Shown piece by piece: positions 18,364 through 50,122 of a stretch of 64,000 nt of DNA. Numbering within the stretch: position 1 is the stretch's first letter; each line of letters opens with the position of its first letter. This DNA comes from Trichosphaerium sp. ATCC 40318 (taxonomy: Eukaryota; Protista; Tubulinea). The notes beneath the pieces are model-generated. The model saw only the letters and a list, made by a program, of their open reading frames with translations. It was not told the DNA's origin and made no database searches. The stretch is from the NCBI GenBank assembly GCA_038496445.1, contig JALMLS010000578.1, positions 248,001-312,000 of the forward strand, written 5' to 3'. The position numbers were made by a program, and so were the translations under genes.

Positions 18364-21300
18364 TTACATACTCAGTCTCCTAACACAAGGTGTACGCCCA
18401 TCAGCGTATACAGGTGGTTCCACCACTATAGGTACTACTTGAAGAGGTGCAGTGGTGGGTCCAGACTATAAAAGTTAGAGAAGGGCAACTACCATGGGCT
18501 GTTAATAGTTTGACGTACAATTACTTCAATGTTCATATCAGCTAGAGCGTTAATGAACGCTGCCACCGCGTCTGGATCACTTAGAAAGTTACGAACAATT
18601 TCAGCAACACTCAGTGTGCTCCCTTAGAATAACAGTAAGAAAAGGAGAGGTTACAAGGAGCGTGTTTACCTCCATTGGAGTTTATCGTAATATCAATAAC
18701 TGTCCCAACTTGTCGTTTAGATAGGATGTCAGGTACAAAGTTATTCTGAGAAGCGCTTCCGGAACCAAGCGGTAATCCAAGTAACTGCAACAATATGTTC
18801 AGTAGTGTATTCAATAAATCACTTTGTATAGGCGATAGGAGGTCTATAAAGAATCGTATGACAGCTAAGTAAAAAAATGAGCAAAAAAAAAAGAAAGAGA
18901 TAGTTCTATCAAACCTAGTTGCTGTGGGCATTCAACGCTCGGGTCAGTTGGATCAATAACAACTTCACCATCCTAAAAGAAGAAATAAGCGAACCTCCAA
19001 CCATTAACTAAGTTATCAACATACGCCAGCGACCCACAGTGAAGGTGAAGTGAACAAGAATTCAAAAGTACCATCAGCAGGATAGAAAGCAGGCGTAGGA
19101 CCAAACGATGTTGGTACACTATTCAAACCCGGTGGGGTCATTGAGTTTGGATCTGTTGTGTTCAACGCGTTAGTAGTTAAGATAATAAAGGACTCAAAAA
19201 ACAGTACCTGGAGTAGATGGCTCTGTGGACGTCCATCCCAAGTGTGCAGTGAAAGTACCATCTTGATTATCTGTTATACAATCTAGTCGTGGTAGAAAAG
19301 GGATTGAAGCAGGAGGTTGAGTTGTTGGTGCTTCTGTTGTCGGCGGTTCTGTGACAGGAGGTTCTGTTGTAGGTGACTCTACTGGAGTAACTGATAATGG
19401 CGGATAGCAGCTTCCGTATGCGTCTTCATCAACAGGAATGTTGCTTGTGATACCATAATGAGTGTTGAAGTAGCTCTCTACCATCTCTATCTCTTCTGTA
19501 CTGAGTATTCTATCGTATACAATAACTTCAGCAACTTCCCAATATGCTCTGTACACCGTAGTATCGGAGAAGTTGTTGATTGTAAAGTGATCAGTATCTG
19601 TAGGATTACCTTGTATCACTGATCGGGTAAGGTTCAAACCATTTCCTCTGTAACTTGTTCGTTGAGATACAGAGAGTACCCATTCGAGTCCAAACCTGTC
19701 AACTTTTTCTGTGATAAACACTTTATTTAGCATTCCACTTCCAGCGACTCCAGCCGTATGTTCTTCATGTCCAGAGAACCACATATTAGGGTCTCTAGCT
19801 GTAAATATACGACCTCTGTTAATATTAGAGGTGTAACTATAAAAGAGTTAGCACAAGCTTTTTTGCTTTATGAAGGTGATTAAACAGTACCGGCTGAGTC
19901 CAAAGAATGTCATTGAGGCTCCTATCGCACCATCAAAGTCAAAGGAATCTCCTAGTTGACCACCAACAATGTTGTACTCTTTGCCGTTTTCAAAGATCCT
20001 TGACAGTATTCTTGGAGTTCCTGCTATTGATGTAGAAGTATGGCCATTACCAGACATGTCAAGCCATACATTACTAATGTCATTGAATGAGTCTCCTGTT
20101 ATCCATGTATAAACGCTATCATTCAATGGCAAACAAGTAGTAAATTTAGGTGTAGGCGAGACAGTTGTCACTGGTTGGTTGGTCGGAGGATCTGTTCTTG
20201 GTGGAAGTGTAAAAGCTGGAGGCTGTGTTGTAGGCGGAGGTGTAACGGGTACAGGTGGATAACAACTTCCATATGTGGCTTCATCAACAGGAATGTTATT
20301 TGTAATGCCATAGTGAGTGTTAAAGTAGTTTTCAACCATCTCTATCTCTTCCGTGTTGAGTACTCTATCATATACAAGCACCTCAGCAACTTCCCAATCC
20401 GAACGCTGTGAACCTGCCATGTAGTTGTTGATTGTGAAGTGATCAGGGAAGTCGGTGACACCTTCAAGAGTTGATCGGGTCAGGTTCAGACCGTTCGCTC
20501 TGTAACTTGTTCTTTGAGACACTGACAATACCCATGAGTCTCCAAAAGTGTCTTCAAGATCTGTAAGCAGAACTGATCCACTTGTAAGCTCGTTGTAACC
20601 ATTCCCAGCAACTCCAGCAAACGTTGCAAGATGCCCAGAGAACCAATTTGTTGGCGCTTTAGTTGTAAAGATACGTGCACGAGATGGACCAGTGTACCTA
20701 CAGTAGAGTCAGTCACGTGATTATTATCTTAATACTGTTTTAGTAATAATTTCGTACCTGCTCATTCCAAAGAACGTCATTGCTTCACCTATTGCTCCAT
20801 TGAAGTCCAGAGAATCCCCTTGTCCACCTGCTACACTTTTGTATACTTTACCATTTTCGTATGTATTTTGTAGTATCCTTGGGTTACCGCCTACCTGCGT
20901 AGAACTATGGCCACAACCGGATTTATCAATCCACACTCTGTTATCCGGATCATATGAGTCTCCTCTAAGCCATGTGTATACATTATAAGTTAGTGGTAAA
21001 CAACCTATTTCAAGAGGAGGGTAGCAACTTCCGTAAGACACTTCATCAACAGGAATGTTATTTGTAATGCCATAGTGAGTGTTGAAATAGCTCTCTACCA
21101 TCCTTATCTCTTCTGTGTTGAGAAGTCTGTTGTATACGATAATCTCAGCTACTTCCCAATCAGAACGCTGTGAACCTGGCATGTAGTTGTTGATTGTGAA
21201 GTGATCTGGATCATCAGGAACGCCTTCAAGATTTGGTATTGTAAGGTCTACGCCATTTGCTCTGTAGTTTCGAATTTGAGATACAGACAACACCCATCCA

Positions 21301-24300
21301 TCTCCGTATCTATCCATTTTGTCTGTAAGCCATACGGGACCGCCTGTTGCCTGATTGTATCCGTTACCACCAACCCCAGCAAACCCTGAAACATGTCCAG
21401 AGTACCAGTTTGTTGGTGAACGAGTTGTAATAATTCTCTGACGAATATCACTTGTATATCTACAATCACGTGTCAGTAATGAACCAAGCTTTAATAAGGT
21501 AGATTTTGTTTTCTATGTTCGTACCTGGTTAGACCAAAGAATGTCATTGAATCTCCTATGGCTCCATCAAAGTCAAAGGAATCTTCAAGATTACCAGACA
21601 CTATTTTGTAGATTTTACCGTTACTGAAAGCTTTCCGTACTGCTTCTGGAGTTCCTCCTGTTGCAGTAGAATGGTGACCATTACCAGAATTGTCAACCCA
21701 TACTTTTCTATCTGTATCATAAGAGTCTCCTGTGAGCCGCGTGTATACACTGTCTCTGTGTGGTAAACAACTCAATAGAGTTATAGGCGGGTAGCAACTA
21801 GCATACAAAGCTGAATTATAAAAGAGAGAAGGCCAAACGACATAGTGAGTACTTAAGTAAGTCTCTACCAGCTGTATCTCTTGAGTGCTGAGTAGTCTAT
21901 CGTATACAATAACTTCAGCAACTTCCCAATGAGAACGCTGTGAACCTTCCAAGTAGTTGTTGATTGTGAAATGATCAGGGTCATCAATAAAGCCTTCAAA
22001 TCTTGATAGTGTACCGGAAAGACCATTCCCTCTATAGATTCTTCGCTGAGATACAGAGATCAGCCATGCCTCTTGCCAAAAATCAAAATCATGTGGTGTG
22101 AGAAGCACTGGACCTCCTGTCAATGGGTTATGCCCATTTCCAGCAACAGCAGTCAATGAGTTTAGGTGCCCAGAGTACCAATTCGTTGGCGAACGTGAAG
22201 TAAATATCCGTTGTCTAAACGTGTCATTTGTGCTTGTGTATCTAAAGAAGTAACAATGAGTTGCTGGTTCATGTTCATAGCTTAAGGTAAAAAGATTTAT
22301 ACCTGCTGACACCAAAGAACGTCATGTAATCGCCTATCGCGCCATCAAAGTCAAAGGAATCTTCAAGTTGACCAGAAACAGTGTAGTAGGTTTTATCGTT
22401 TGGAAATTCTTTTTCTTCTTTTATTGGATTGCCGCCGGTTGCAGTAGAGCTGTGGCCATTACCAGAAACGTCATGCCATACTTTTGTAACGTTATCATAT
22501 GAATCACCTCTAAGCCACGTGAACACACTATCGCTAAGTGGTACGCAGTCATCGATAGTAAAAGGAGCTGTAGGAGCTGTGGTAGGTTGAGTTGTTGGCG
22601 AAGCTGTTGGAGCAACAGTTGTAACTGATATAGGAGGGTAGCAACTTCCGTAAGACACTTCATCAACAGGAATGTTATTTGTAATGCCATAGTGAGTGTT
22701 AAAGTAGCTTTCGACCATCTCTATCTCTTCTGCGTTGAGTACTCTATCATATACAAGCACCTCAGCAACTTCCCATTCCGAACGCTGTGGATATACAATT
22801 GTTGTATACGGTATAACTATTGTAGGTCTATACTTGTTGATCGTAAAATGGCTAAGCTCAGCAGGAATGCCTTCTAGAATAGGCAATGTCAAGTTTAAAC
22901 CATTTGCTCTGTAATTGGAATGTTGAGAGACAGACAACACCCAAGAATCTCCAAATCTATCTGTTAGCTCCGTAAGAGAAACTTGACCTGTGCCAGCAAC
23001 TCCAGAGAGCCCCGAAATATGTCCAGAAAACCAATTTGCTCCTACAAAGGCTTGAGAAGTAAATATCCGACCGCGATGTGTTCCATTGTATCTATCAATA
23101 AAAATTAGATGCAATTCAGATTCGTTTGGTTTCACGTGCTCACAGCACTGGTAATTTCGTACCTGCTCATTCCAAAGAATGTCATTGATCCGCCTATTGC
23201 TCCGTCGAAAGTGACAGTGTCTTTTTGTAAACCGGATACAGTTTTGTATACTTTTCCGTTATCAAAAGTTCTTTCTACCACTGTCGGAGCGCCATCTATG
23301 CTTGTAGCTCCGTGACCATTACCAGACAAATCAAGCCACACGCGATCAGTAGGATCATACGACTCTCCTGTAAGCCATGTATGTACATTATCGCGCAATG
23401 GTAAGCAAGTAGATTCACGTGTAGCAGGTGGGGAAGGCGAAAAAGTTGGAGCAACTGTTGCAGTTGATGATATTGGAGGGTAGCAACTACCGTATAGAGC
23501 TTCATCAACAGGAATGTTAGCCGTGATACCATAGTTTGTGTTCAAGTAACTTTCGACCATCTCAATCTCTTCTGTACTGAGTAACCTGTCATAAACAATA
23601 ATCTCCAGTACTTCCCAATCTGAACGTTGTGATTGGTTAAAATAATTATTGACTGTAAAGTGGTCAGGATCCTCGGGAGTGCCTTCAATGTTTGGTAGCG
23701 TTATGTTAACACCATTTGCTCTGTAATTAGTGAGTTGAGACACAGATAATACCCAACTGACTCCGAATTTATCTTCCAGATTTGTAAGAAAAACCGGTCC
23801 ATTTGTCCACACATTGAAGCCGTTTCCAGCAACTCCAGCAGAAGATCCATAATGCCCAGAGAACCAGCTCGATGGATGTCTAGATGTAAATATACGCCCA
23901 CCGCTTAAGCCAGGGTATCTAAGACATTGATTGAGTAAGTTTTTATCTTGAACATGATTCAAAAACGTGGTTGCTCTTTTTGGTCTTTGCGTTCGTACCT
24001 ACTGACCCCAAAAAACGTCATTGAGTCACCTATGGCCCCATCAAAGTCAATGGAATCTCCCTTTACACCATGCATTACATGGTGCCTTTTGCCGTTTGAA
24101 AAAGTGTGTTGGAAATACGTTGGATTGCCTGTCACTGAGGTAGAATGATGGCCATTACCAGATACGTCCTCCCACACTGTGCCAGAGTTGTATGTAACAT
24201 ACGAGTCACCTCTTATCCATGTATAAACACTATCGCTTAGGGGCAAGCAACAGTTACAAGATGCTGTGGTACGTATTACGTATAATACAAGAGTGAGAAA

Positions 24301-24324
24301 CAACACGCTACGATAAGGTGTCAT
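18364..24324 (-). CDS. Large secreted protein with six tandem ConA/LamG-like beta-sandwich domains, P/T linkers and C-terminal CVRRLSM
   Basis: Signal peptide MTPYRSVLFLTLVLYVIRTTAS. Six units of CLPL.D.VYTW..GDSY..W.D.SGNGH...SR|Y...SDWEVAEV.VYDR.L..EE..VE.Y..HY, each with an intron at the same R|Y position. Last exon SGPTTAPLQVVPIVVEPPVYADGRTPCVRRLSM*. The fold assignment is inference. Confidence 0.85.
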
Positions 24325-25541
24325 TTCAGTCTGTACTTCAGTTTTTTTAGTGTACTTGAATAGAGTACACAGTTTTACTATTGCGCGACGCATTCCGTAA
24401 AAACTACCAAGAAAAATACTACCAAAAGCCATTGTCGCAAAAACAGAAAAAACCACGTGATTAATTAATGCTTTACAGCGTCCAAAATACAAAATAAAAA
24501 AAAAGGTAAATATTTAGTACCCACTTTTTGAATCACTTGTTTTCACTCCCGTGGACATAATATATAAATTTTACCTCAGTGCCGCGCTAACAGTTGTATG
24601 TTATCGTCTTTGTGAGGTAGATAACTACAGTAAAACGGCAACCGATATGGGCAGTCGATAACTTTCATAAAACATGAATTACGCAATCTTTACCCAAAAC
24701 CAGGGACAATCGCTAAGGGCACGTGAAAGTAGTAATAAAAACTTAAAGAACTCACAAATCTGTAATGTAGTAAAGTAGTTGTCAAAGAATATTATAAAAA
24801 CGTCACAACTAGTCATATTACAGATCGTGGAAAGTTGTGAAAGCGGAATGGAAAAAAAATTTGCAATTTTGAAGAAAAAACTTACTTTATTAAAGTAGCG
24901 CAAAACAACATTAGAATTACAAATGCCTACGCACAGGAAGTAACAAGGGCTCGCTTATTCTTGAATTTACTTCTAAAAAACTTATGCGAATCTGGAAAGA
25001 CGAGCGGGTAGGATCAAATATTCTCTGAGCTCCATCAGTTTTCTAAAAGTAGAGCAATGAAGAAAGTTTTTTGTGTCAAGTGAGATATTGTCTTTGCAAA
25101 AAAAAATAACGAGCAAAATAGCACTTGCACTGATTAGAGTGTACCCAGAACACCATTTGTTCACGACGAGGCACGTACGTATTTATTCAGCGGCAACAAC
25201 AGATATCACGATGAAATCTACATACAAGTACCCATCTACCCAAGAGTTAATCAGGCATCAGGAATAGGTAACAAAAACAAACCAACGTACGCGATGAGCC
25301 AAACAATTGTCAAAAGTGCGAAATTTAACTCTGGACGCTTCCAGACCAACGTGGCAGAGCGTTGTCATACTTTATGTAACCAATCCGAATAAAATCACGT
25401 GATCAAATTGTGATAAATCACGCAAAGATATAGCAACTGGGTACTGTAAAAGCCTCTATTACATTCGTATGCTAGTTACCGAACAACATTGAGGTCAACG
25501 TAAGTGTACAACGATTAACTCAGAAAAACGAACAAATCGTC

Positions 25542-26354
25542 ATGTCAACAGCTATAGATATTCTCTTCCTTGCTCCTGATACAGTAAACTTTGATTATCT
25601 AAAAGAATACGTACAAGCGCATAAGACAGAGTCTGCTCTAGCCTTGGAACTGTACGTTAAAGCTTTTTTTGCTTAATTAATTCGTACAAGGCATAGAACC
25701 GCGCATCTACCACCAAAGACGCGAGAAGGTGAATGTTTGAAGAGTTTGTACGTGTTGTTTACATTTGTTTTAGGTCGCCAGTTTATCGACTTTCTGGTTA
25801 TTATCGTACGGTTTAACGCACCAAGTGGTATCTAAACGCTATTAGGTGGACATGCGGTCAAAAACGTCTGTAGAGCTTTTACAACATGCGTTACCACATT
25901 GTGCTTTGCGACAATATATTGGCCGTATGGCTATTGTGGTTTCAAACCGTACGAATCGATTTTAAAAGTTTTTGGCGCAATTTAAAGGAAGCTTGCTCAC
26001 AGTGGTTTAGACGAAGATGAAACACAACACGCATTTCCTTTTTCGATGGTAGAAGGGCTAATAGAGACTTTGGAGCTACAACCGCATTACACCCAGTTAA
26101 ACTCAAGAGAAGTATCTAGACATACTGCAGGCAGACTTATGAGGTGAACAGACATTTTAGAGCTATTTCGTTGGCGGCCGTTGAACTGATAAGTTTGTAG
26201 GGATATTGAAATGGTTGCTGGCGTGTCTCCGTTATCTCCTTTGCAAGCGAGTTCGTTTGTGTTGTATTAATAATTTATAAACCTGTATACACTTGTAAAA
26301 ACATATAAATCACTAGTAGAAGGTGTTCAACACGTTCTTTTAGAATTCCGTTAA
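25542..26354 (+). CDS. Hypothetical protein, ~6 short introns (3' end approximate)
   Basis: ATG 25542 MSTAIDILFLAPDTVNFDYLKEYVQAHK..., followed by a chain of ~40-50 nt GT-AG introns linking open exons. Confidence 0.55.
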
Positions 26355-26396
26355 GTGTGAGTTAAGTATAGAATTCATTGCGCCGTTACATCAAGT

Positions 26397-29204: not shown

Positions 29205-29316
29205 AGGAATAAAAGGGAGAAATTAGTTAACCATGTCTCACATTCCAAAAACTGAAAAAAACAAAAAAAAATTTAACGATCAGATGAACCCCAACTGTTA
29301 CTACACTCCATATGGA

Positions 29317-33482: not shown

Positions 33483-35313
33483 ATGAATTCTCATACCTTA
33501 CCTGTATTCTTACTATTCTCCCTGGTGTTGATGATTGTTACGATAAATGGAAACACATTGAATTTACCAAAGAGAGGCATGCCTTTGCCTACAAGAGTTG
33601 AAGTGGATGTTGGATGCTTAGGTACAGAGAAGCAGAAGTGTTGATCGCTCTGTTGATGTTTTCTAACCCTGAATAGATATCTACAAGCCTTTCCGTATTG
33701 CTGAACTTATACCAGAGTTAAACGCAGCTACAAGCGATAGTGAAGAACCAGCGATGGCTTCTGGAGTGATAAATGGAGTGGTAAGTACTAAGATATTGCG
33801 CTTTATTTATTCATTGGTGATTTAGGAGTATTTCGTACTTACTTTTGAGTATGAGGATTCAGCGACTACAAATGGAGTTGAAGACTTGGTTATTGTTGTC
33901 TTCACGAAAGAAGGTATGTGAGGAAAACGAGATCAACGGGAAAAAAATGAGACGTCATACTGACTTTGAGCCAAGCACTTTCGAAGGGTGAACTTTACTA
34001 CTTTGTGATACAGAATCGTAACGATGCGGATATAACATTTGGAAACAATGAGTTTGCCATCGTCGCTTCAACTGATGATGACAGATCACAACCATTTGTC
34101 TTTGCATTCTTTCTTGTTGAAGATACAATGAATGGTGTACGGAACATTAATTAACACATGTATTTGCTTATGGTAAACAAAGGGTCTCATGTTGGAACAG
34201 GAGCTTACTATTCATTCCATTCGTAGGAGAGGGCTACTATTTAGACCAAAGATAGCTTACAACCCAGGTACGAGAATTTTTTTACTTACTTTTTTTTCGA
34301 AGAAAGTAGTGCTCTGACTGTTGTTTCTTCTAGTTGATAATAAATACTTGGTTACTCACGCATCGTTGGGGCGTAATGTATATTCTATCATTGATTCCAC
34401 AAAGTCACTTGTTGTAAGTAATGCCGATATCCGTAAGTACACTGTTTGTCAAACGTATGTTAACAATACTATAGCAATGAGAAGTTTGCATTATGATGTT
34501 GTATATGGCGGACAAGCTTGTAACTGCTTTGTCATTATTTTTTCCGGATACGAGGAGTTGTTATATTGGATAGTAGATGAAAACAATCTACCCATTGTAC
34601 GTACTAGATACACAATTTAACAACAACTGATTGTTTCCTTTTAAGGGTACTGATCTTATTGTTGAACCAACTTTACACGAGTCAATGGATATCAGAGCAA
34701 CCTACCACCCAAATACACAATTTATTGGTATCATGTCATACGGAATTACTTACAGTGGACCAGAGCCTGAAGCAACTAGAACACGTGATACCTCTGAGTT
34801 TTTTCTTCGTCAAGTTGATGCAATGTTTACTGTAAACAGTATTGATAGTGTACAAACTCTTGTTCAAGAACTAGATTCTTCTGATATCGCTATTGGTATG
34901 GAAGCGATAGCTGCTAATAATGTGAGAGGCATATTCTTAGGGGTAACTGTTGATGATGATAGTACAAAGGGGCTATTGTACATCACACAATATCATACTG
35001 GATTTAAATCTTTTAAAGTCAGAGCACTAAGTTTAGAAGGTTAGTCTAGACTTGTATTCATAAGTTCAACACGCTTACTGTATATTATAGACAACGATCC
35101 TGAACAACCAGCAATCGCATATGGCACTATGAGTGGTACAACTGTTGTAAGTTGGTTAATACGTAATTTTGTTCTATATTCATGTTCTTGTAGATTGCTG
35201 TTCAGACTGCTAGGCTACCTACAGATGATAACAGTGTTTGGATATATTTTTTGGGAGATTCAATTCAAAGTGTATTCTATCCACAAAACGGGCAATGTGG
35301 AAGACGACTGTAA
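33483..35313 (+). CDS. Secreted protein family B, copy B1 (beta-rich; ends QCGRRL*)
   Basis: MNSHTLPVFLLFSLVLMIVTING-NTLNLPKR-GMPLPTRVEVDVGCL|..., multi-exon; last exon IAVQTARLPTDDNSVWIYFLGDSIQSVFYPQNGQCGRRL*. Paralogous to 35749-37087 and 45692-47511. Confidence 0.8.
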
Positions 35314-35748: not shown

Positions 35749-37087
35749 ATGAATTCTCATACATTACCTGTATTCTTACTATTCTCCTTGGTGTTGATGA
35801 TTGTTAAAACAAACGCCATGCCATTGCCTACAAGAGTTGAAGTGGATGTTGGATGCTTAGGTACAAAGAATCAAATATATTGCTCATTCTTTTGATGTTT
35901 TCTAACTGAATAGATATCTACAAGCCTTTCCGCATTGCTGAACTTATACCAGAGTTAAACTCAGCTACAAGCGGTAGTGAAGAACCAGCGATGGCTTCTG
36001 GAGTGATAAATGGAGTGGTAAGTACTAAGTTACCATGTTTCTTGTTCATTGATTTAGGAGTATTTCGTGCTTGCTTTTGAGTATGAAGATTCAGCGACTA
36101 CAAATGGAATTGAAGACTTGATTATTGTTGTATTCACAAAAGAAGGTATGTGACAAACGCATTTGTTAAAGTTATGCTGACTTTGAGCCTAGCTCTTTCA
36201 TTCAAAGGGCGAACTTTACTACTTTGTGATACAGAATCGTAACGATGCGGATATAACATTTGGAAACAATGAGTTTGCCATCGCTGCTTCAAATGATGAT
36301 GACGTATCTCAAGTTTTTGTGTACTTTCTCGTTGAAGATACAATGAATGGTGTACGTGAACATTATTTCAAACACGTGTTTGCATGCGTTTAGCTTATTG
36401 TAAACAAAGGGTCTCATGTTGGAACGGGAGATGTTAGTACTGATCTTATTGTTGAACCAACTTTACACAATTCAAAGGATATCAGAGCAACCTACCACCC
36501 AAATACACAATTTATTGGTATTATGTCATACGGAGATACTTACAGTGGACCAGAGCCTGATGCAACCAGAACACGTGATACCTCTGAGTTTTTTCTTCGT
36601 CAAATTGATGCGATGTTCACTGTAAACAGTATTGATAGTGTACAAACTCTTGTTCAAGAACTAGATTCTTCTGATATTGCTATTGGTATGGAAGCAATAC
36701 CTGATACAAGAGGCATATTCTTAGGGGTAACTGTTGATGATGATCGTAGAAAGAGGCTATTGTACATCACACAATATCAATCTGACAATCAATCCTTTAA
36801 AGTCAGAGCACTAAGTTTAGAAGGTTAGTCTAGACTTGTATTCATCAGTTCAACACGCTTACTGTATATTATAGACAATGGTCCTGAACAACCAGCAATC
36901 GCATATGGCACTATGAGTGGTACAACTGTTGTAAGTTGGTTAATACATAATTTTGTTCTTATTCAGTTTATTGTAGATTGCTGTTCAGACTGATAGGCGA
37001 CGTACACATGTTTGGATATATTTTTTGGGAGATTCAATACAAAGTGTATTCTATCCACAAAATGGGCAATGTGGAAGGCGACTTTAA
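35749..37087 (+). pseudogene. Family B copy B2 with an internal frameshifting deletion
   Basis: Near-identical to B1 but lacks the equivalent of ~34205-34645. The junction at ~36435 puts TDLIVEP out of frame (ORF stops at 36625). The tail QCGRRL* is retained. Confidence 0.7.
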
Positions 37088-37452: not shown

Positions 37453-39915
37453 ATGGGAAACGCACATACGTTTGTGTGCAGAGATGAAACTATATATATT
37501 GGCAACGATAAGTTCAATGGAAAAGGAGAGATTACGTATGCTAATGGAGATAAATATTGTGGGCAATTTAAGGATGGAGAACGCTATGGTTTTGGAGAGC
37601 TCACTTACGCTGATGGGAAAAAATACGTGGGCTATTTTATGTACAATAAACGTGATGGTAAAGGGGAGCTAACATGGTCAAATGGTAAAAAATATATTGG
37701 CAAGTTTATAAATAACAAACGTACTGGTAAAGGAGAGATCACGTGGCCTAAAGGAGATACGTATGTTGGCGATTTTAAAGACAATAAATTTAATGGCAAG
37801 GGAGAGTTTAAATGGGCCAAGGGAGATAGATACGTCGGTGAATTTAAAGACAATAAATTCGATGGTATGGGAGAGTTTACGTATGTAGATGGTAGAAAAT
37901 ATACTGGTGAGTATAAAGATAATAAACGAAATGGAAATGGAGAGTTTATTTATTCGAATGGAAACAAGTACACAGGTGAGTTTAGAGAAGGCAAAAGAAA
38001 TGGCAAAGGAGAGCTCACGTGGAAGAATGGGAATAGGTATATTGGTGAATTTATAGATGACAAACGTACTGGTAAGGGAGAGCTTACCTTAATCGATGGA
38101 AATAAATATATCGGTCATTTTAAAGATGGTAAACTAAATGGTAAAGGAGAGTTCTTCTTTGGAAATGGAGACAAGTATTCTGGAGAATTTAAAGCCGATA
38201 AACTTAATGGTATAGGAGAGTACCAATGGGCTGATGGAAGGAATTATAGCGGTGAATTTAAACAAGGCAAGCGTACTGGTAAAGGCAAGTATACCTTGAA
38301 AAATGGAGATCAATATGTAGGTGAGTTTAAAGACAATGAGTTCAATGGCAAAGGCGAGTTTACATGTAAAGATGGAAAGAAGTTTGCTGGTGAATTTAAG
38401 GATGATAAGTTCATCAAAGGAGAGATTACGTACGGAAATGGGGATAGGTGTATTGGACAATTTAAGGACAACAAGTGTAACGGAATAGGAGAGTTTATTT
38501 TTGCAGATGGGAAAAAATATATTGGTGTATTTAAGGACAATGAATTCAACGGCACAGGAAAGATTACATGGACGAATGGAGATCGATATGTTGGTGAATT
38601 TAAAGATAATAAATTCAACGGTAAGGGAGAGTTCATTTATGAAAACAGGAGTATACATTCAGGTGAATATGAAGATGATAAACAAAATGGATATGGAGAG
38701 TTTATATATTCAAATGGAACAAGATATACTGGTCAGTTTAAAGACAACAAGTTTAATGGTTCTGGGTGTATGTGGTTAATTGATGGTACCATATTGAGCG
38801 GTACATGGGTAAACGGGGATATAGTTGGAAGTGGTACAATAAGTTTTATTGGAGCTAAGGATATTGAAGCAATATACTTGCTCCAACGAAAAAAGTTGGT
38901 TACTTTTCTCAATGAATATGAAGTAACATATAACCCCTTTACACTCTCAAGTGTCCTCAGAAAGGACTCTATCCAACCCTTGTCCTGGACATATAAGCAA
39001 GTGTTGTTTATACTATTCAAGATTGAACCAAAGCTTGTTCCTATATTAAGAAAACAACAATTGAGGTATGTTTTTTTTGCAAAAGTGTGGACTTTTATGT
39101 TTTGTATAGAGGTAAAGATTTTTTGGAGCTAGACAAAACAACACTTCTATTGCTTGATGTACCGTTGGGCCATGCAAACAAAGTTCTTGATTTTATCGAG
39201 AACTTGAAAAAAGGTACAAAGAGGAAACAAAATCAGCGACAAAACTCTCACATGAATTTAGAAACTATGAGTTCAAAGTTGAAAGCATACTCAAAAGACA
39301 ATTTGTTGACCAAAGCCTGTTTTGATCCTAATTACAAATACACGAAGTTTGGATCTGAGCCTGAACATTTAGATATTATTAAAAACACCATTGATACTAT
39401 TAAAAACTGTCATCAAGATGATCAAGTACGAAAATGAATTATAAAACTTAACAGCTGACTAAGAACCCATTTGTAGATGGATGCGTCAGATAACTCAAAT
39501 GATACCAATCTAGGCAATACAAGCGATGCATCTCACATGCCTGAAAGTGCAGATGATTTGATTTCAAAGAACTCTTGGAATGATAAATCCAATGATTCTG
39601 TTGTCACCAAAGTACTACCAGATTTACCGTTATTATGAGTATTTTAACCTACTGTATTAGCCAAGCTTGAATTATAGTTATAATAATGAATCAATCACTC
39701 CTTTAACTACAAGTGAAGAGGTAATACACAATTGGGGGTTGTTACTAATAAGCTTGGGAATTGCAAATGAGCGAGCTTCAGAGCTTGGATCATTGATGAA
39801 TGAAGCAGGTGTACAACTAGATGAAATAGATCAAAGTTTGCTAAAAGAACTTGGTCTCAATGCCATTGAACGTGTCAAAGTAATCAGAGCAAAGAAAAGA
39901 AACCAAAGTTGGTAA
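37453..39915 (+). CDS. MORN-repeat protein with C-terminal SAM-like domains
   Basis: About 19 repeats of Y.GEFKD.K..G.GE.T..NG in one long exon. Spliced C-terminus WTYKQV...RGKDFLELDKTTLLLLDVPLGHANKV and LLKELGLNAIERVKV. Confidence 0.88.
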
Positions 39916-40129: not shown

Positions 40130-42132
40130 TTATGGTACAAGTGACAATCGTCGTACACAACATTGTCTATCGACAAACACTGGTGCTATTGGTGGGGAGT
40201 TGTAGGTGGAGGTGGAGGATCGAAATTAAATGCAGCTATGCCCAAACTTGTTGGAGCATTAGTGGCAAAGGTGGTTACAGCATCAGTATTTACATTAATC
40301 GATAAATGCCTCCCATCTAGACAATTAACAATTAAAGTGTTTGTCGATATTGATGTCATACCTACAACAGAAAAATTGTGAGATGCACACAAGGATATAT
40401 AAAGAACTTACCACCAATGAAACAAAAAGTAGGCTCTGTAATTCTTATTGTGTGTTGTACAGCACAAGATCCAGATAGAAAATTAGGAATAACTTCAATA
40501 GAACACCATCAACAATTGCTCCTATTATTTTTATGTAAGCGTGATAACAAAACATTTCTGGATTTTGTTTTAAACACGTGCCACGATTATTCTGTTGGAC
40601 ATCCGTTCTTTGATCGCTGCAAGCAATAGTAAACTTACAATTTTGTAAATCTACTTCATAAACAATCAATTCTGAACCCTCTGCGAATATTCTTCCACTG
40701 TCTTTATCTATCATCAATGCAATTATTCTAATACTGGTAATACATGTTTTATCCTTGACAAAAAACGTAAGTTGCAAACACAGTGTGTAAAATATAAAGT
40801 ATGGTGTAAAAGAACGTAAGTTGCTGTTGTGTATGTAAATAAAAGATATCGTACAATTTGACATGTGTAAGGATCAATTGAGAATAGCTCTTGGTTCGCG
40901 TTTACATACAATACTTTATCAAGTACAGCACTGTACTCCAAAGCGACAGGTTGAGTACCCAATTGTAGATTATCACATGCTATAAGCAGTGATTAGTGAC
41001 GATTTAGTTAAAATGTACTCGTACATGCTATGACAGTATTTGTGTCTGAAAGTAGCCTATAATCAAATCCTGGTATTCCAGCTTTTCCTGTAATTAAAGC
41101 ATCAATCACACCTCCTTGAGGTGCTATTGTAGGAGGAGGTGTAGGCATCACAGGTGCAACAGGAGGCATTGTTGTATCTACTGGAGGATCCAATGGTCCT
41201 TCAAAAAATAGAGAAGCAATTCCATCTGATTGTGGTAATGTTGTTGTTAACACAGATATTGTTGAGGTTCCAATATCCAAAGAAAAATACCCCTCAAATA
41301 AAGGGCGGCTATCAACATATCCAATAATTTGATTATCTGAGACTGCTGTAATATCTAGGAACAATTAATTAAAGGTAATTTAGAGTATCAAAAAAAAGAT
41401 GTACCTGCAGTTACGTCCCGCATATTAGCAGCATATTCCACTGTTTGAGAAGCAACACAAGACATAGGACCTGTTAAAGGAGCTATAGCCATTCTATCTA
41501 ATCCGACAGTGTATAATGTATCTCCATTATCTCAACTATAACATCTTTGTAAGCAAATACAACATGTCTTCCCGTTGCCAGATGAAAAAAAAAACGTACG
41601 CCCATATGCGGGGCCAATATTTATTACGTCAACTCTACAGAAATGACAAAACGAGCAATCAGTTGGATCAATCTGTGCAACAAACCCCAATACGGAGAGT
41701 CCATATAGTATTTGTGTGGCCTTGTCAACAGCAATTGCGTCAAATTCTTTACTCAACTCACATGTATTCTAAACACGATTACTTGAGTAATTTAACATAT
41801 AGGTACATGCCTGTACTACACATGTTCGTGGATCTGCCCGAAACAAGGTGCCATCTGTCATTACAAATAGTGTTCCTGTAGCAGGTAGATAGGACATTGA
41901 AATAATAGCTTCAGTACTGAATGGGTCACTACAGCCTAAACAAAAACGCTTAGTGTTAAACAAATAGATAGTATTCATCTTGTATGAAACTATGAAGAAC
42001 AACTGATGGTGTGGTAATTGATCTTATTTCTATACCTGATGGACCGTCAACTGCATATGCATTGTTAGCTTGTGAAAGCGTATACGATAATAAAGTAGTA
42101 AGAACAAGAAACAAGAGAGGTGTTGCGCTCAT
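40130..42132 (-). CDS. Secreted protein family A, copy A1 (Cys-containing, propeller-like; 1-nt frameshift near the 3' end)
   Basis: Signal peptide MSATPLLFLVLTTLLSYTLS; paralogous to A2 and A3. A G4 run at ~40194 (G5 in A3) shifts the frame; the restored tail is PIAPVFVDRQCCVRRLSLVP*. Confidence 0.7.
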
Positions 42133-42527
42133 TGTGTGGTTGTTTACTAAAAGTTATCATTCTTTAACTGCTACCTCTAAAAATCACGTTGAGTGTTTGT
42201 AGTACTCGAGATTTCGCTATAAACCAAACGACAGTGTCTTTATAGAACGGCTTAAAATAGAAATCACTAAAAATCACGTGACATTTTCGTGTTTGAAATA
42301 CTTTCTTAGCGTTTAAAGAATAAGCATCTCGCTACTTTATTATTTATAGGAGTAAACTGGATCTCACCTGTAAGATCCCTATTCCTTTTAATGTTAAGAT
42401 GTGTTGTGTAGGGTTTTACTTCAGCGAGTGTTAATACTTTGATGTAGCGGTTAAAACATACCAACTATGCCCGCTGTAAAAGCTTGTATGTTGTAATAAA
42501 TGAATGTTTGATACAATTTTCATTGGT

Positions 42528-42710
42528 TTAAAGTCGTCGTCCACATTGTCCTGGTTTTGAGCTAATGACTCTTTGAATTGAGTTTTCCATCATAAACAAT
42601 AAAATAGAGTCCTCACTTGTATTGTCATTGTCCCTTTCAACCTCAACTGCAACCTAAACAATGATGGTGAATACAGAATAAAAACGCTCTCAATATCAAG
42701 GCTATTTGAA
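42528..42710 (-). pseudogene. Family B 3'-terminal remnant (last exon, ends PGQCGRRL*)
   Basis: Nearly identical to 45692-45850, then jumps to sequence matching ~46214-46236. Confidence 0.8.
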
Positions 42711-42898
42711 AACAAACATCCTTAACGCAGGCTGACTGATACAGCTTTTCAATGCGTAAGAATTAGCCAAGGAGGTATTGCTTGCTCTGTTTTAAACTTG
42801 TAGTGTACTTTTCTTGATAATGAGGAACGCTAAGAACTTCGATAACTTTATAGCAACGAAAACCCTGAGAATCGCATTACCTCAAACATATTTTAAAA

Positions 42899-43030
42899 AT
42901 GACTGCAAAAAAAAAAGAGGTTACCTATACGAATGGAAATGGATATGTTGGTGAATTTAAGGATGACAAACGTAATGGCAAAGGAGAATACACATTGGCC
43001 AATGGAAATAGATATGTTGGCGAATATTGT
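42899..43030 (+). pseudogene. MORN-repeat remnant
   Basis: EVTYTNGNGYVGEFKDDKRNGKGEYTLANGNRYVGEY, about 1.5 repeats, then unrelated sequence. Confidence 0.75.
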
Positions 43031-43257
43031 GTTTCGCTGTGCAATAATTATGGATGTAACACTGGGATTGGGATGCTAGTTGCTCAACAGATTAATACAT
43101 GGTATAGCGTATATATGATCTTAAATTGGAAGAAGAATGCATTTTAAGTAAGCTTGGTAATGACTAATTAAACTAAATCGCTAAGTGAGAAATTGGCCTT
43201 TTTTTTTTTGGCAGCTTTTATTGGATAACGATGTAGTACTTTGATGGACTCATAATT

Positions 43258-45172
43258 TTATGGTACAGGTTGTGACAATCGTCTTACACAACGTTGTCTA
43301 ACAAGAGCAAACGCTGGTGCTACTGGAGCCATTGGTGGGGGTGGTGGAGGATTGAAATTAAATGCAGCTAAAACAAAGTTTGTTGGTGCAGTCATCGAAT
43401 AGGTGGTTACAGCATCAGTATTTACATCAATTGAGAAATACCTTCCATCATGACAGGAAACAATTAAAGTGCTTGTCGATATTGATGTCATACCTGCAAC
43501 AGAAAAATTAACATGAGGTGTCCAAAGCTAGAATAGAGTTTGACATTAGGTCGTACCCAGTATACCGCATAAACTAGGTAATGCGACTACAGTTATTGTG
43601 CGTTGAGGAACACATGAGTCAGATAGATAATTAGGGGCGACTGCAACAAAAGAGGTGCCGCCACGATATAGAGTACCATCAATGATTTCTCCTGTTAAAA
43701 CATGTGAGTAACATCAAAGGCTTTTCTGCAAAACTGCTTAAGGCGCGTGCCTTTGCCGAGATTTGTGTTACCACCACTGCAAGCAATTGTTAATTTACAA
43801 TTTGCTAAATCTACTTCATAAACTATCCCACCCTCCAGAGCGAATATTCTTCCACTGTCTTTATCTATCACCAAATCAAGCAGACCAACACTGGCGGTAC
43901 ACGTTTTGTCCTTGAAAAAGAACATAAGTTGCAAATGTAGGATGTAAAATAAAACGCACAATTTGACATGTGTAAGGATCAATTGAGAACAGCTCGTGGT
44001 TTGCATTTACATACAATACTTTATCTAGTAAAGCACTATACTCCAAAGCGACAGGTTGAGTACCAAATTCTGGATTATCACATGCTATAAGCAGTGATTA
44101 AGTGACGATTTAGTTAAAATGTATTCGTACATGCTATGACAGTATTTGTGTCTGAAAGTAGTCGATAATCAAATCCTGGTATTGCAGGTTTTCCTGTAAT
44201 TAAAGCATCAATCACACCTCCTGGAGGTGCCAAAAATAGATAAGAAATGGCACTGCTTCGTTGTAGCCGTATTAGAGACTCCGATATTGTTGAGGTTGCA
44301 ATATCCAAAGAAAAGTAGCTATCAAATAAAGGAAACCCATCATGGTATCCAATAATTTCGTTGTCAGAGACTGCTGTAATATCTAGGTAACAAATAAGTA
44401 AAACAAAAGTTTACCATTCGACGTACCAGTAAAAATGTCAATTAGATTAAGAGGATATGCCACCGTTTGAGAAGGAACACAAGCCATAGGACCTGTTAAA
44501 GGTGCTATGATCATATTTTCATCTCCGGCCAAGTACAACATATCTCCAATTATCTCAGCTATAAAAATGCACGTGATAAGCAAGCTAAGAAATAACTAGT
44601 AAAAAACGCACATCCACTGACAATAAACGAAAGATTCGTCAAGTCCACTTTACAGTAATGACAAATAGAGCAATCTTTTTTATCAACCTGTGCAATAAAT
44701 CCCAATGGATGGACAGCATATAATACTTGAGTAGCCTTATCAACAACGATTGAAACAAATATATTACTGATTTTACAAGTATTCTAGTACAATTAATAAT
44801 TGTAAGATGTCTACTAACGAGCATACCTTTACTACACATGTGACTGGATCTACTTGAAACAGGATACGATCAGCATTCAATGCAAATAGTGTTCTTGTGG
44901 CAGGAAGATAGGTCATTGAAGTCAACCTTTCAGTACGGAATGGGTCGGCACATACTAAACAATGTGGTTAGTAGTTACAAACAAACTAATGTTCTATTTT
45001 TAAGGATGAAGTTATAACAAAGGTGGCATCTCGCACTCTTTACAGTTGTCTGAAATATATCTCCTAACTTCATTTCTATGCCTGATGAACCGTCAACCAC
45101 ATAAACATTTTGTGAGAGAGTGTACGCCAAGAAAGACGTTATGACAAGGAACAAGACAGGTGTTGCGTTCAT
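43258..45172 (-). CDS. Secreted protein family A, copy A2 (ends CVRRLSQPVP*)
   Basis: MNATPVLFLVITSFLAYTLSQ...; same exon structure as A1/A3; lacks the central Pro-rich linker (APPGGVIDALITGK). Confidence 0.8.
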
Positions 45173-45691
45173 TGTGTGGGTGTTTACTAAAAGTGATCAT
45201 TCTCTTAACTGCAATCCTCTAAAACCCACGTTGAGTGTTGCAGTACTCGAGATTTCACTAGAACCTACAAAACACAGTATCTTAGTTGAAAGGCTAGCAT
45301 TAGAATCACTAAAAATCACGTGATTATTTTGTGTAGCTCACCATAACTCGCCATCTAGCGGTAAAAGACTAGAAATCGGTCTTCGTTTGATTTGTTTTTA
45401 AGGTTATCAATGAGCTCAACCGGAAGATGTCTAGGCTACTGGTTATTTATTTAGTCGCAGTTGTGTCATTTAGAGTTCCGCATTACTTCCGAGCTAGTGG
45501 TAAAACCTTCCGTCCAGGAAACGATTAAATATTGCAACTTTGTAAGGAGAAAAAGGCATACAATGTCTGTAGCAAGAAGATTTACGTAGAAACACTTAAT
45601 ACTCTTTTGTTGCCTGTATAATAATGATGGTTATGTCCTCCGCAACGATCTCTAAATAAATGAAGGAATGTTTGATGCAAATTTTATTGTT

Positions 45692-47511
45692 TCAAAGTCG
45701 TCGTCCACATTGTCCTGGTTTTGAGTTAATTACCCTTTGTATTGAGTTTTCCATCATAAACAATAATATAGCATCCTCACTTGTATTGTCATTGTCCCTT
45801 TCAACCTCAACTGCAACCTAAACAATGATGGTGAATACAGAATAAAAACGCTAATCATGAACTGAGACTTACAGCTGTTGATTCAGTCATAGTCCCATAG
45901 GCGATAGCAGGTTGCTCAGGATCAAACCCTAGTTTAGGTATTAATAATTTGACTGGAACTAGCAAACAAACCTGGTATGGTAAGCGACACAACTTTAAAG
46001 GATAGAGTGGCAGATTTATAAATTGTAATGTACACTGTTCTCTTTGTTCTTGATGCATCAGGAGATAACCCTATAAAAGTACCATGTATATCCGGTATTG
46101 CATCCATACTTATAACAATATCAGAAGGATCCAAAGGTTGAACAAGTGTTTGGACACTGTCAATACTGTTCACATTAAAACTATCATCAACTTCTCGAAG
46201 AAAAAAGTCTGAGCTCTCAATATCAAGACTATTTGGAACACTTTGGTAAGACATGATACCAATATATCCTGATATTGGGTGATACTGTGCTGCTAAACCA
46301 CTGGAGCTATGTAGATTATCTTCTCTACCCTAAAGACAATTAATAAAGTGTTTGCAATTCAATGACAACAATTAAAAAAATCAGTAATGCATACAATAAC
46401 TGCTTCGTTTTCGTCTATTATCCAATGAAATATTGTTTCTCCAGAAAATATAACATCAAAACAATTACAAGCCTGCCCTGCGTATACAACATCAAAATCT
46501 CCTCCGCTCATTGCTAATAAAAACAATAAACTCCTCTCATTGAATATTGATGGAAAATACTTACGTATTGCAGCTGTAGTGATCATCTTTTGAGAGTCAA
46601 TAACTGAGAATAAGTTGTTACCGAATAAGGTATTACCATCTATCCTGTAGGTAACCAAGTATTTATCATCAACTAAATGCAAGAGTGAATAACGAACAGA
46701 AAACAGAATCTACTACTGACATACCTGGGTTGTGAGCTATCTTTGGTTTAAATCGTACTATGTCACTCTGAGCATGAACAGTTATCACTTGTTCGACAAT
46801 TATGCCCTTGATAAACATAAATTTCATGGATTTCTCATCTTCAACGTACACCGTTTACTGTATCTTCGACAAGAAATATTGCATACACTGTGTCTTGGCC
46901 TTCAAAAAATGAGGTACCAATAATAGCAATTTCATCGTTCCCAAAAGCAATGTTGGCATCGTCTGTATTAATTACTCGAAAGTAGGTTAGGTCACCTAGA
47001 GCAAGTCCTAAATATAACCTTAGGCATGCTGCCGGTTGCGTTTTGAGGTGTTGTTGTACCTTGCTTGGTGAATACAACCACAATCAAGTCCGTGGTTGTT
47101 GACATTTCGTCATCGTACTCAAAAGTAAGCACAAAATATTCCTAAAATAGGTCACGACGGAGAAGTCACGTGAATGAAAAACATAGGTTAAGTATTTGAA
47201 CTAACCACTCCGTTTATTATTCCGGACGCTAATATAGGTTTTTCGCTATCGCCTGTTACTTCATCAAGCTCAGGTATGATTTCGAGTATTCTAAAAGGTC
47301 TGAAGATATCTACAGGCTTATTAAACTTATCTGTGCGTTTTTATTTCTTCTTAGTACCTAGGCAACCACCGTTAACCTCGATTCTGACAGGTAAAGGTAG
47401 GTTACTTCTCTTTCTTACAACCTCGTGGCTACCACGTGTTTTTACCAATAGTACAAGCAAGGTGAATGTTAGGAATAAAGTAAATGTGTAAGAGCAGCTG
47501 TTGTAATTCAT
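45692..47511 (-). CDS. Secreted protein family B, copy B3 (diverged; ends PGQCGRRL*)
   Basis: MNYNSCSYTFTLFLTFTLLVLLVKTRG-SHEVVRKR-SNLPLPVRIEVNGGCL|...FNVNSIDSVQTLVQPLDPSDI...PEQPAIAYGTM...SKPGQCGRRL*. Confidence 0.82.
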
Positions 47512-48012
47512 TTGCGTTATTGTTTGTAGACTTTTACTGTTTTGAAGTACCCTGACTGGTGGCAAAATGTGATTGTAGTACAACACAAGAAATCGTAAGA
47601 ATCTTCGAAGAATATGTTACACTTGTGTTATCACGCAATAGTTTCTTTGAACAGTCCGTCAGAAATATTCAAAGAATTGGAACGTGGTACTTCGTGTTAT
47701 GTAAAGAAAAGACCAGACTTTCTAGAATCAAGCTACAGGGCATATAGCAATACATGGTAACATAAAAATGTTTACTTGAAATAATAGTATTTCACGAACT
47801 CATCTCTACAGGTCATAAATTGTGTTTCACTGTGTTAATTTTATGATGTCCAACAGTGAGAATGGGATTGCTACTGTTGATATTAAGATTAATATATGGC
47901 AGGTGTACGATCTTACATTGGAAGAAGAATGCATTTTTTGTAAGCTTGTGGTAATGACAAAATTAAATTTATTATCTGCACAGAAGTAATTGAATGCGTT
48001 GATTCATAATTT

Positions 48013-50122
48013 TTATGGTACAGGTTGTGACAATCGTCGTACACAACGTTGTCTATCAACAAACGCTGGTGCTATTGGCACCATTGGTGGGGGAGTTGTA
48101 GGTGGAGGTGGAGGATTGAAATTAAATGCTGCTATACCCAAGCTTACTGGAGCATTAGTAGCAAAGGTGGTTACAGCATCAGTATTTACATTAACTGAGA
48201 AATACCTTCCATCTAGACAATTAACAATTAAAGTGCTTGTCGATATTGATGTCATACCTACAACAATTAACTGTGATATGTGTACAAGGCAATATTTAGA
48301 ATATGTAAACATTAAAAAACGTGAGATCTTACCACCTATTGAACAAGCCAAGCGTATTGGGCGTTGTACAGCACAAGATCCAGATAGAAAATTAGGAATA
48401 ACTTCAACAAAACGGTCACCACGGTATAGAACACCATCAATGATTACTCCTATTAAAATATTCATGTCAGTTGTATGTAACACGAGTTTTTTTTTCCGAA
48501 ACACGTGCCACCACTATTCCCTTGTTGATTGGTTCTTTGATCACTACAAGCAATGGTAAACTTACAAGTTTGTAAATCTACTTCATAAGCAATCAGGTCT
48601 CCACCCTCGGCAAATAATCTTCCACTGTCTTTGTCTATCATCAGTGCAACAATTGTAACACTGGCGATACACGTTTTGTCCTTGAAGAACGTAAGTTGCT
48701 GTTGGTGTATGTAAATAAAAGGTATCGTACAATTTGACATGTGTAAGGATCAATTGAGAATAGTTCTTGGTTCGCGTTTACATACAATACTTTATCAATT
48801 ACAGCACTATACTCCAAAGCGACAGGTGGAGTACCAAATTCTGGATTATCACATGCTATAAGCAGTGATTAAGTGACGATTTAGTTAAAATGTATTCGTA
48901 CATGCTATGACAGTATTTGTGTCTGAAAGTAGTCGATATTCAAATCCTGGTATTCCAGCTTTTCCTGTAATTAAAGCATCAATCACACCTCCTTGAGGTG
49001 CTATTGTTGGAGGAGGTGTAAGCATCACTGGAGCGACAGGAGGCATTGTTGTATCTACTGGAGGATCCAATGGTCCTTCAAAAAATAGAGTAGTAATTCC
49101 ATCTGATTGTGGTAATGTTGTTGTTAACGCAGATATTGTTGAGGTTCCAATATCCAAAGAAAAATAGCTATCAAAGAAAGGACGCCTCTCAAGGTATCCA
49201 ATAATTTGATTATCTGAGACTGCTGTAATATCTGAGGAACAAATTAAGTATAGATAATTTTGAGAAATGAAAAATGTACCTGCAAAAACATCCTGCATAT
49301 TAGCAGTATATGACACTGTTTGTGAAGGAACGCAAGCCATAGGCCCTGTTAAAGGTGCTATAATCATATTATTATAAGCAACTATATACAATGTATCTCC
49401 AATTATCTCAACTGTCATAATACAACAACTTAATTAGCATACTAGAACAAAGATTTGAAAAAAATATCGTACGCCCACTCGTGGTACCAATATTTGTTAT
49501 ATCCACTGTACACAAATTGCAAAACGAACAGTCTGTTGCATCAATCTGTGTAACAAACCCCGATAAGGAGAGTCCATATAGTATTTGCGTAGCCTTGTCA
49601 ACTGCAATTGACGCAAACTCTACACTCAATTCGCATGTATTCTATATCAATACAATCAATTAATGGTGTAATTATACACTCAGATCATACCTTTACTACA
49701 CATGTGCGTGGATCTACCTGGTATACGATACCAAGCTCAGACAATACAAACAGTGTTCCTGTAGAAGGTAGATAGGACATTGAACTAATAGCTTCAGTAC
49801 TGAATGGGTCGCTACAGCCTAAATAAAGAGCTAAGTATCAAAGCCTAACCGAACTCCGCACTAATGTTTTCTAGACTACTCGAGTAAAAGAAGTTAAAGG
49901 TCAATAGGTAGCTACCTATTCATCTTGTAATAAAACTTTGTGCTGTACTATGGAGAATTGTGAATGGAAGTATTACGTACTTTGTAGAATATCGTCTGTA
50001 TTGGCAATTGATAGTATTTCTAAACCTGATGGACCTTCAACTGCATATGCATTATTAGCTTGTGAAAGCGTATACGATAATAAAGTAGTAAGAATAAGGA
50101 ACAAGGCAGGTGTTGCGTTCAT
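48013..50122 (-). CDS. Secreted protein family A, copy A3 (ends CVRRLSQPVP*)
   Basis: MNATPALFLILTTLLSYTLSQ...; two beta-rich halves with recurring (V/I)DP.TC motifs, separated by a PPVDTTMPPVAP linker. Confidence 0.82.

Follow-up and report, generated by a model that had tools for sequence, protein, structure and literature searches.

Why should putatively secreted proteins with no visible resemblance to each other end in the same five residues? The question is raised by a 64-kb stretch of a contig from the amoeba Trichosphaerium sp. ATCC 40318 (GenBank assembly GCA_038496445.1, contig JALMLS010000578.1, positions 248,001 to 312,000 of the forward strand). This whole stretch is called the window below, and positions are counted from its first nucleotide (nt). 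In it, an earlier sequence-only reading found C-x-R-R-L at or close to the C-termini of three kinds of protein, designated here the six-domain protein, family A, and family B, and suggested that it could be a new sorting or processing signal. A GC content of 37% and short GT-AG introns across the window mark it as eukaryotic. The tail that contains the motif, CVRRLS or more generally CxRRL, looks like an undescribed address or attachment label. It is on balance probable that C-x-R-R-L is the core of a lineage-specific C-terminal tag, read in the secretory pathway and leading to clipping of the protein end and linkage of its cysteine to the cell coat or into oligomers.

The genes and gene remnants that carry the motif in the window are as follows.

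18364–24324, minus strand: six-domain secreted protein, from open frames and a gene model; 12 exons, ~1770 residues, 11 GT-AG introns of 47–80 nt.
18367–18438, minus strand: tail module of the six-domain protein, ...EPPVYADGRTP-CVRRL-SM; core CVRRL at 18373–18387, stop codon at 18364–18366.
33483–35313, plus strand: family B gene B1, ending GQ-CGRRL-stop; core at 35296–35310.
35749–37087, plus strand: family B gene B2, apparently shortened, ending GQ-CGRRL-stop; core at 37070–37084.
40130–42150, minus strand: family A gene A1, with tail CVRRL-SLVP-stop; core at 40145–40159, match to the tail profile described below at E 5e-7.
42528–42653, minus strand: family B relic B3, last exon only, ending GQ-CGRRL-stop; core at 42531–42545.
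43258–45172, minus strand: family A gene A2, with tail ...APAFALVRQR-CVRRL-SQPVP-stop; core at 43276–43290, 5' exons spliced in transcript contig X1.
45692–47511, minus strand: family B gene B4, 10 exons, 448 residues, with signal peptide, ending GQ-CGRRL-stop; core at 45695–45709, covered by RNA from end to end.
48013–50122, minus strand: family A gene A3, repeated blade-like units with an internal proline-rich linker; profile match at E 3.6e-11.
48031–48045, minus strand: core of the A3 tail, ...APAFVDRQR-CVRRL-SQPVP-stop.

Translation bears out the motif at all eight sites reported by the sequence-only reading: C-[VG]-R-R-L is encoded at each, on the strand given, with a stop 0–5 codons downstream. 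Six-frame translation of the entire window yields nine C.RRL matches, every one of them near a stop. In 300 block shuffles of the window the mean was 1.8 matches, with a mean of 0.5 near a stop (28% of shuffled matches), and no trial gave more than three near-stop matches. The ninth match, CVRRLSV-stop at 36994–37008 on the minus strand, lies opposite B2 as the reverse complement of a B2-specific stretch (TDRRRTHV). It has no upstream open frame and is probably due to chance, with ~0.01 such matches expected per window. No C.RRL is found in the frames of the GH9 (glycoside hydrolase family 9) region at ~14.8–17.2 kb, in keeping with the earlier statement that the cellulase gene there lacks the motif. 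Scans of the window against Rfam and for tRNA genes were empty.

In the 70 Mb of genome searched, degenerate DNA patterns for C.RRL plus a stop codon show no enrichment (571 occurrences, vs. 579 for reversed-pattern controls). Raw counts are therefore uninformative, and the signal emerges on reading the true codons and their context. A gapless alignment of 16 tails gives the consensus [PA]-P-[VAI]-[YFW]-x3-4-R-x-x-C-V-R-R-L-S, and a 23-column profile of the tail has matches at 49 genomic places, of which 45 reach E ≤ 0.01, and adds the variants CIRRLS, CMRRLS, and CVRRI-stop. The complete module is ~16–23 residues long: a proline- or proline/threonine-rich linker, then [PA]-P-[VAI]-[YFW]-x3-4-R-x-x-C-[VIM]-R-R-[LI]-S, then 0–6 poorly conserved residues and a stop. 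To judge from these alignments, C-x-R-R-L is the invariant core of a longer unit, with an aromatic residue and an arginine upstream and an invariant serine downstream.

The position of the tail is as constant as its core. All of the profile matches that were read (~30) are C-terminal, and in every tail read genome-wide (~36 distinct DNA sequences) the stop follows 0–8 codons past the motif. Family B and one further locus (L063) stop directly after the leucine or isoleucine; in every extended tail the first residue after the leucine is serine, and the extension is variable and at most seven residues long. Near-identical duplicate contigs inflate the number of profile matches, and distinct tail genes are estimated at 35–40. 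In the stretches read, the tail loci of the contig pairs 179/193, 34/493, 235/282, and 419/86 show little or no difference, which points to haplotigs left uncollapsed in the assembly or to very recent duplication, and copy counts are accordingly upper bounds. Two candidates were set aside as probable chance matches: L006, and C225/C599 (...KIRT-CGRRL-stop), in a basic protein on which a signal peptide was not seen.

When the sequences upstream of the tail are clustered, at least seven body families emerge, which with family B make at least eight groups of carriers:

Family A: ~14 tailed copies among ~40 family loci, with blade-like repeated units and an internal proline-rich linker.
Family B: six genes and one relic, ending CGRRL-stop.
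Family C: four genes, ~290 residues.
Family D: three genes, ~250 residues.
Family M: three to four mucin-like genes, in which PPTTL repeats over as many as ~600 residues lead directly into ...QYRKRCVRRLSKNEL-stop.
Six-domain protein and its paralogue (L004).
L057: single gene.
L009/L061: proline/threonine-rich frame, clear gene body absent.

The earlier description of a motif on three families thus holds in that the motif is C-terminal, conserved at the protein level, and found on dissimilar signal-peptide proteins. It requires correction in that the carriers fall into at least eight groups genome-wide, the conserved unit is longer than five residues, and family B shares only C-x-R-R-L with the others. 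The family M genes (L017:1164–3104, and L008:7044–8375 and 3095–3640, on contigs 179 and 48) have up to ~120 tandem PPTTL units in one frame, and the family M tail closes an open frame of 646 codons. Family M tails end CVRRLSKNEL, the last four residues of which resemble an endoplasmic reticulum retrieval pattern.

Conservation of the tail is evident in the peptide and not in the DNA. The codon differences between families listed in the sequence-only reading are correct, and its conclusion that the motif is not a copied DNA block is strengthened by comparison across families: at the C, R, R, L, and S positions, identical residues use the same codon in 106 of 345 between-family pairs (31%), with switches between AGR and CGN for arginine, CTN and TTR for leucine, and TCN and AGY for serine. 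Between the two six-domain paralogues, divergence in this region is 9% of bases; every one of the five comparable tail codons is nevertheless changed, by six base substitutions in total, all of them synonymous and keeping CVRRLS. The tail is also the longest invariant block among the 11 distinct last exons of family A and the six of family B. Synonymous scrambling within an invariant tail rules out both a recently copied DNA block and untranslated sequence, and demonstrates maintenance of the peptide itself; the codon comparisons indicate that strong purifying selection on the tail acts at the peptide level.

The bodies to which the tail is attached have no detectable relationship. BLAST between families aligns the tail only, and hhalign comparisons of tail-trimmed alignments of families A, B, and C and the six repeats give probabilities of 0.1–2.3%, the best being signal peptide against signal peptide. 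The bodies had been described as mutually dissimilar, with the proviso that homology found by hidden Markov model comparison would make the motif simple inheritance; by that comparison the A, B, C, and six-domain bodies are not detectably related. Pfam has no match for 20 exon translations. Two apparent exceptions were rejected: a match between A3 and L001:3825–4103 (E 0.002), considered as evidence for A–C homology, lies upstream of a family C gene and resembles a decayed family A relic, and a merging of families A and B in the initial clustering was an artefact of neighboring genes inside the flanks.

Where the N-terminus is readable, the carriers start alike. In seven of seven such families (the six-domain protein, A, B, C, D, M, and L057) the N-terminal exon encodes a methionine, a short polar stretch, 10–15 hydrophobic residues, and a small-residue site, as in a signal peptide. 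Within the window this applies to the six-domain protein, A1–A3, B1, B2, and B4, in agreement with the claim that the full-length members have signal peptides. At the other end, a proline/threonine stalk usually precedes the tail, and a hydrophobic segment never follows it in the tails read.

The gene models that place these tails at protein ends have several kinds of support. The six-domain model (1770 residues) comprises a signal peptide, six tandem repeats of ~250 residues with proline/threonine linkers, a C-terminal region, and the tail, ending ...EPPVYADGRTPCVRRLSM. Its tail hinges on the final two introns, of 47 and 53 nt, both canonical GT-AG. These are backed by the gene modeller and by the paralogue on the same contig, which is 91% identical, in line with the ...CVRRL-SM ending predicted after splicing; a 6-nt indel between the paralogues falls within the proposed last intron. 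The gene modeller uses codon usage and splice scores and recovers all nine B4 introns in exact agreement with the RNA-verified structure, although B4 was within its codon training set and the check is only partly independent. The A1 tail frame has just 22 codons, from which it follows that a frameshift separates the tail from the body, as implied by the earlier need to restore one base. A1 is probably a pseudogene or reflects an assembly error in a homopolymer run.

RNA evidence is most complete for B4. Spliced transcript contigs X1 and X2 give nine joints (CT..AC on the plus strand, that is GT..AG on the minus strand) with introns of 43–65 nt, and the joined exons form a single open frame from the methionine to GQCGRRL-stop, beyond which one transcript contig continues unspliced for ~350 nt. 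From these two features together, the family B C-terminus is genuine. Of the terminal exons that the sequence-only reading proposed to confirm by RNA, that of B4 is confirmed; the A2 and A3 ends fall outside the contig coverage. X1 (1725 nt; window 44784–45815, minus strand) runs from B4 exons through the B4 stop, continues unspliced to ~45342, and then removes four introns in entering the A2 5' exons, so that B4 and A2 either overlap in their untranslated regions (UTRs) or are co-transcribed by read-through. X1, but not X2, also removes an extra 50-nt GT-AG intron (46587–46636, minus strand) within B4 exon 6, which would break the frame; this is probably an unproductive alternative splice.

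The tail was compared with known short signals by direct reading, which supports the earlier judgment that it is not KDEL, PTS1 (type 1 peroxisomal targeting signal), CaaX, or a glycosylphosphatidylinositol (GPI) signal. KDEL-type signals end [KRHQSA]-[DENQ]-E-L; the tails end SM, SL, SQ, SQSIV, SQPVP, SQIN, RRL, or in further such sequences, and only family M ends KNEL. PTS1 is cytosolic and ends [SAC]-[KRH]-[LM], whereas family B ends R-R-L, the other tails are extended, and the N-termini are signal-peptide-like. For CaaX or C(x)3X the cysteine is out of place (five residues from the end in family B, 7–12 in other families), and the carriers are secretory. Like the amoeba tail, KDEL/HDEL, PTS1, and CaaX are short and C-terminal, but they need a fixed distance to the end and other residues, PTS1 and CaaX are cytosolic signals, and in the amoeba 0–7 residues may separate the motif from the end. 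A GPI signal likewise terminates proteins that have a signal peptide and a glycosylated stalk, and the small residue that marks its attachment site may be cysteine; it needs, however, a hydrophobic tail of 12–20 residues, and the amoeba motif is followed by at most seven mostly polar ones.

Other systems share individual features. In bacteria, LPXTG/sortase, PEP-CTERM/exosortase, and GlyGly-CTERM tags also place one C-terminal motif on many unrelated secreted proteins, often after a proline/threonine stalk, and were likewise found by comparative reading. Those tags are prokaryotic and have a membrane helix plus a basic cluster behind them; the amoeba tail is eukaryotic, has at most seven polar residues and no helix or other hydrophobic segment after the motif in the tails read, and has no known processing enzyme. 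The Toxoplasma and Plasmodium export elements, TEXEL (RRLxx, cleaved by ASP5) and PEXEL (RxLxE/Q/D, cleaved by plasmepsin V), have the R-R-L core in common with it. R-R-[LI] is invariant in the tails, and most A, D, and L057 tails have RRLSQ or RRLSE, which fit RxLx[QE]; family B and L063 have no residue after the leucine position. These elements serve apicomplexan export, usually lie close to the N-terminus, and lack the conserved cysteine and upstream aromatic residue. The RXL propeptide sites of diatom silica proteins embody a similar idea. For a kexin/furin site the R-R pair is present in the tail and P-domain genes are present in the genome, but P4 would be the invariant cysteine and the conserved Leu-Ser would fall on the discarded side. 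The CRGKA pentapeptide of Giardia variant-specific surface proteins is also cysteine-led, basic, and C-terminal on many protist surface proteins; it is a cytosolic tail after a helix in a single family, whereas a proline-rich linker precedes the motif here. The secretory tailpiece of IgM and IgA and the T peptide of acetylcholinesterase have a near-terminal cysteine that forms intermolecular disulfides and controls assembly or retention, but they belong to single vertebrate families and have no sequence similarity to the tail. In concept, bacterial C-terminal sorting tags and cysteine-bearing tailpieces are the nearest counterparts of the tail, which is assigned to no named family.

If the tail is a tag, it would be read inside the secretory pathway, and its carriers would thereby share one fate. 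In a first step, the short serine-led extension (at most seven residues) would be a disposable propeptide, removed next to R-R-L to leave a mature end ...C-x-R-R-L, such as is already encoded in family B and one family C member. In a second, the single tail cysteine at the end of the stalk, flanked by a basic patch, would make a covalent link, either a disulfide or an enzyme-made bond, which would tie the protein into the fibrous cell coat (the test) or into covalent oligomers. Removal of the extension beside R-R-L is suggested by the invariant serine, the short variable extensions, and the two families ending at ...RR[LI]. Since the motif lies at varying distances from the protein end, recognition of the terminal carboxylate by a receptor, as with KDEL and PTS1, is disfavored. 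Cleavage leaves unexplained the invariant cysteine, the arginine three residues before it, and the upstream aromatic residue, which favors the cysteine-linkage reading. The carriers appear to be extracellular, and the tail sits on a stalk end, the usual site of surface-protein anchoring signals.

Candidate enzymes can be named for the clipping step. The Toxoplasma Golgi protease ASP5 has the cleavage motif RRLxx and also matures C-terminal ends (PMC4764566). The Trichosphaerium genome has pepsin-like (PF00026) protease genes at four or more loci as well as P-domain convertase genes, so that both enzyme classes stay in consideration. As for linkage into the coat, the isolate that was sequenced, a gamont, does bear a smooth fibrous test (PMC10521059). 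More ambitiously, the tail could be the substrate signal of a new eukaryotic attachment system, in which an enzyme would recognize ...R-x-x-C-[VI]-R-R-L-S, trim the end, and join the protein covalently to a polymer of the fibrous test by a cysteine-based or transpeptidation-type bond; this seems rather unlikely. Such a system would do work equivalent to that of bacterial sortase or of GPI-dependent wall anchoring with different components, an idea offered with similarly low expectation.

The function of the tag is what we infer, and several points weigh against a clipped and cysteine-linked tag. Some family A members (~40% identity; contigs 23, 43, 172, 321, 329, 385, and 497) gave no tail-profile match. 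In these the match to the last blade sits in much longer open frames, and they may carry a different C-terminus. Signal peptides were called by eye rather than with SignalP, and ~30 of the 45 profile matches were read, leaving 15 unread. The transcript contigs stop short of the A2 and A3 ends, confining RNA support to the family B tail (B4), with none on CVRRLS-type tails. Family B, in turn, lacks the linker, the aromatic residue, the upstream arginine, and the serine. Cysteine counts (four conserved in mature B, 18 in the six-domain model, ambiguous in family C) do not demonstrate a free thiol. Nor was the tail found outside this genome, in searches that are weak for a tail of 20 residues: its profile gave no match at E ≤ 0.001 among 1.84 billion representative proteins, a threshold that a 24-position profile can hardly reach. 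Word-index protein searches with the A3 last exon, the family M tail region, and a near full-length family D frame were blank, in an index that needs three shared 5-mers and similar length and is evidently without this genome's proteins. No relevant literature was found on CVRRL, CGRRL, or CxRRL.

Among other explanations, the tail could be a protease maturation site and nothing more, cut either after R-R-L in the manner of TEXEL or after R-R by a dibasic convertase, with the cysteine simply part of the recognition site. The invariant R-R-[LI], the serine that always comes next, the short and variable extensions, the candidate enzyme families encoded in the genome, and the precedent for RRLxx cleavage at C-terminal ends (PMC4764566) all fit this. 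It is nevertheless unlikely: it is hard to see what would be gained simply by trimming 0–7 residues from a stalk end, family B would be shortened by one leucine at most, the cysteine would occupy P4, where furin-type enzymes favor arginine, and the cysteine, the aromatic residue, and the arginine 3–9 residues upstream are conserved as strongly as RRL. Alternatively, the cysteine might be lipidated in the secretory pathway and, with the Arg-Arg patch, hold the stalked protein on the outer leaflet in place of GPI. A cysteine beside a basic cluster is a common membrane-binding design, and the order of signal peptide, globular domain, proline/threonine stalk, and short C-terminal signal matches that of GPI-anchored surface glycoproteins. 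We know, however, of no lumenal enzyme that lipidates a C-terminal cysteine, the tails have no hydrophobic segment or sign of membrane association, and the conserved Leu-Ser and upstream aromatic residue would be left unexplained, so that a lipid anchor seems very unlikely.

The remaining alternatives concern the origin and reality of the tail. It might have spread by exon shuffling or gene conversion, or the carriers might be relatives too diverged to recognize, and in either case it would be a structural end-piece and not a signal. In this direction point a longer similarity, PP[VI]Y-x-x-GR-x-P-C, shared by the six-domain protein, C, D, and L057 (BLAST E 1e-7 over 17–22 residues), the separate exon formed by linker and tail in the six-domain gene, and the possibility that A and B are both beta-propellers. 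But in A, B, C, and M one exon encodes both the tail and family-specific sequence, the body profiles show no match, a structural end-piece is unexpected behind 600 residues of disordered repeats, and shared origin does not explain why the peptide is fixed while synonymous sites are randomized; inheritance alone is about as unlikely as maturation alone. Family B calls for a separate question, whether its CGRRL end belongs with the CVRRLS tag or instead places the last cysteine in an internal disulfide with the one that directly follows the signal peptide, as might close a propeller ring, the R-R-L being coincidental. Mature B has exactly four conserved cysteines (one N-terminal, a C-N-C pair, and the tail cysteine), its matches to beta-propellers are weak look-alikes, the linker and flanking residues are absent as noted, and by rough estimate about one family per genome should end C.RRL by chance. 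Conversely, GQCGRRL is invariant in six copies that otherwise differ at most last-exon positions, the B end coincides with the other tails clipped before the serine, B genes interleave with A genes in the array, and one transcript contig joins B4 to A2. A separate family B is a real possibility, though a doubtful one. Finally, the CVRRLS tails could be artefacts of gene modeling, untranslated or located in UTRs or pseudogenes, as the missing transcript coverage, the frameshift in A1, and the lack of a clear gene body at L009/L061 would allow. This is scarcely credible given that in family A one open frame takes in both the conserved last blade and the tail, that the family M tail closes so long an open frame, that synonymous-only change is not expected of untranslated DNA, and that the modeller reproduced the B4 structure exactly.

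To our knowledge, almost nothing has been established about the making of the cell covering in amoebae with an organic test, or about how proteins come to be placed in it. Recognition of short C-terminal tags such as KDEL, the GPI signal, and LPXTG gave access in each case to a trafficking or anchoring pathway. The tail described here picks out, by one peptide, ~40 proteins as candidates for the coat or for secretion, spread over at least eight orphan families, and supplies a handle for reporter and proteomic work that can be mutated at the cysteine, the Arg-Arg pair, and Leu-Ser. If the tail directs covalent attachment or a new lipidation, it would belong to a new eukaryotic post-translational pathway; if it marks a maturation site only, it would still be a useful annotation rule for the lineage.

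As to the bodies themselves, the six-domain repeats have Laminin_G_3 as a look-alike at 0.95–0.98 (an assignment to Laminin_G_3/ConA-like domains by look-alike search only), and an AlphaFold model of one such LamG-like repeat, from a 13-row alignment, has a pLDDT (predicted local distance difference test score) of 39. Immediately downstream of the six-domain gene comes the GH9-type cellulase gene (14800–17200, minus strand). Between B2 and A1 is an intact single-exon MORN-repeat gene (37453–39132, plus strand; 559 residues), and a short MORN fragment copy (42869–43144, plus strand) adjoins the B3 last-exon relic; gene and fragment are the remains of a duplicated B-MORN-A segment.

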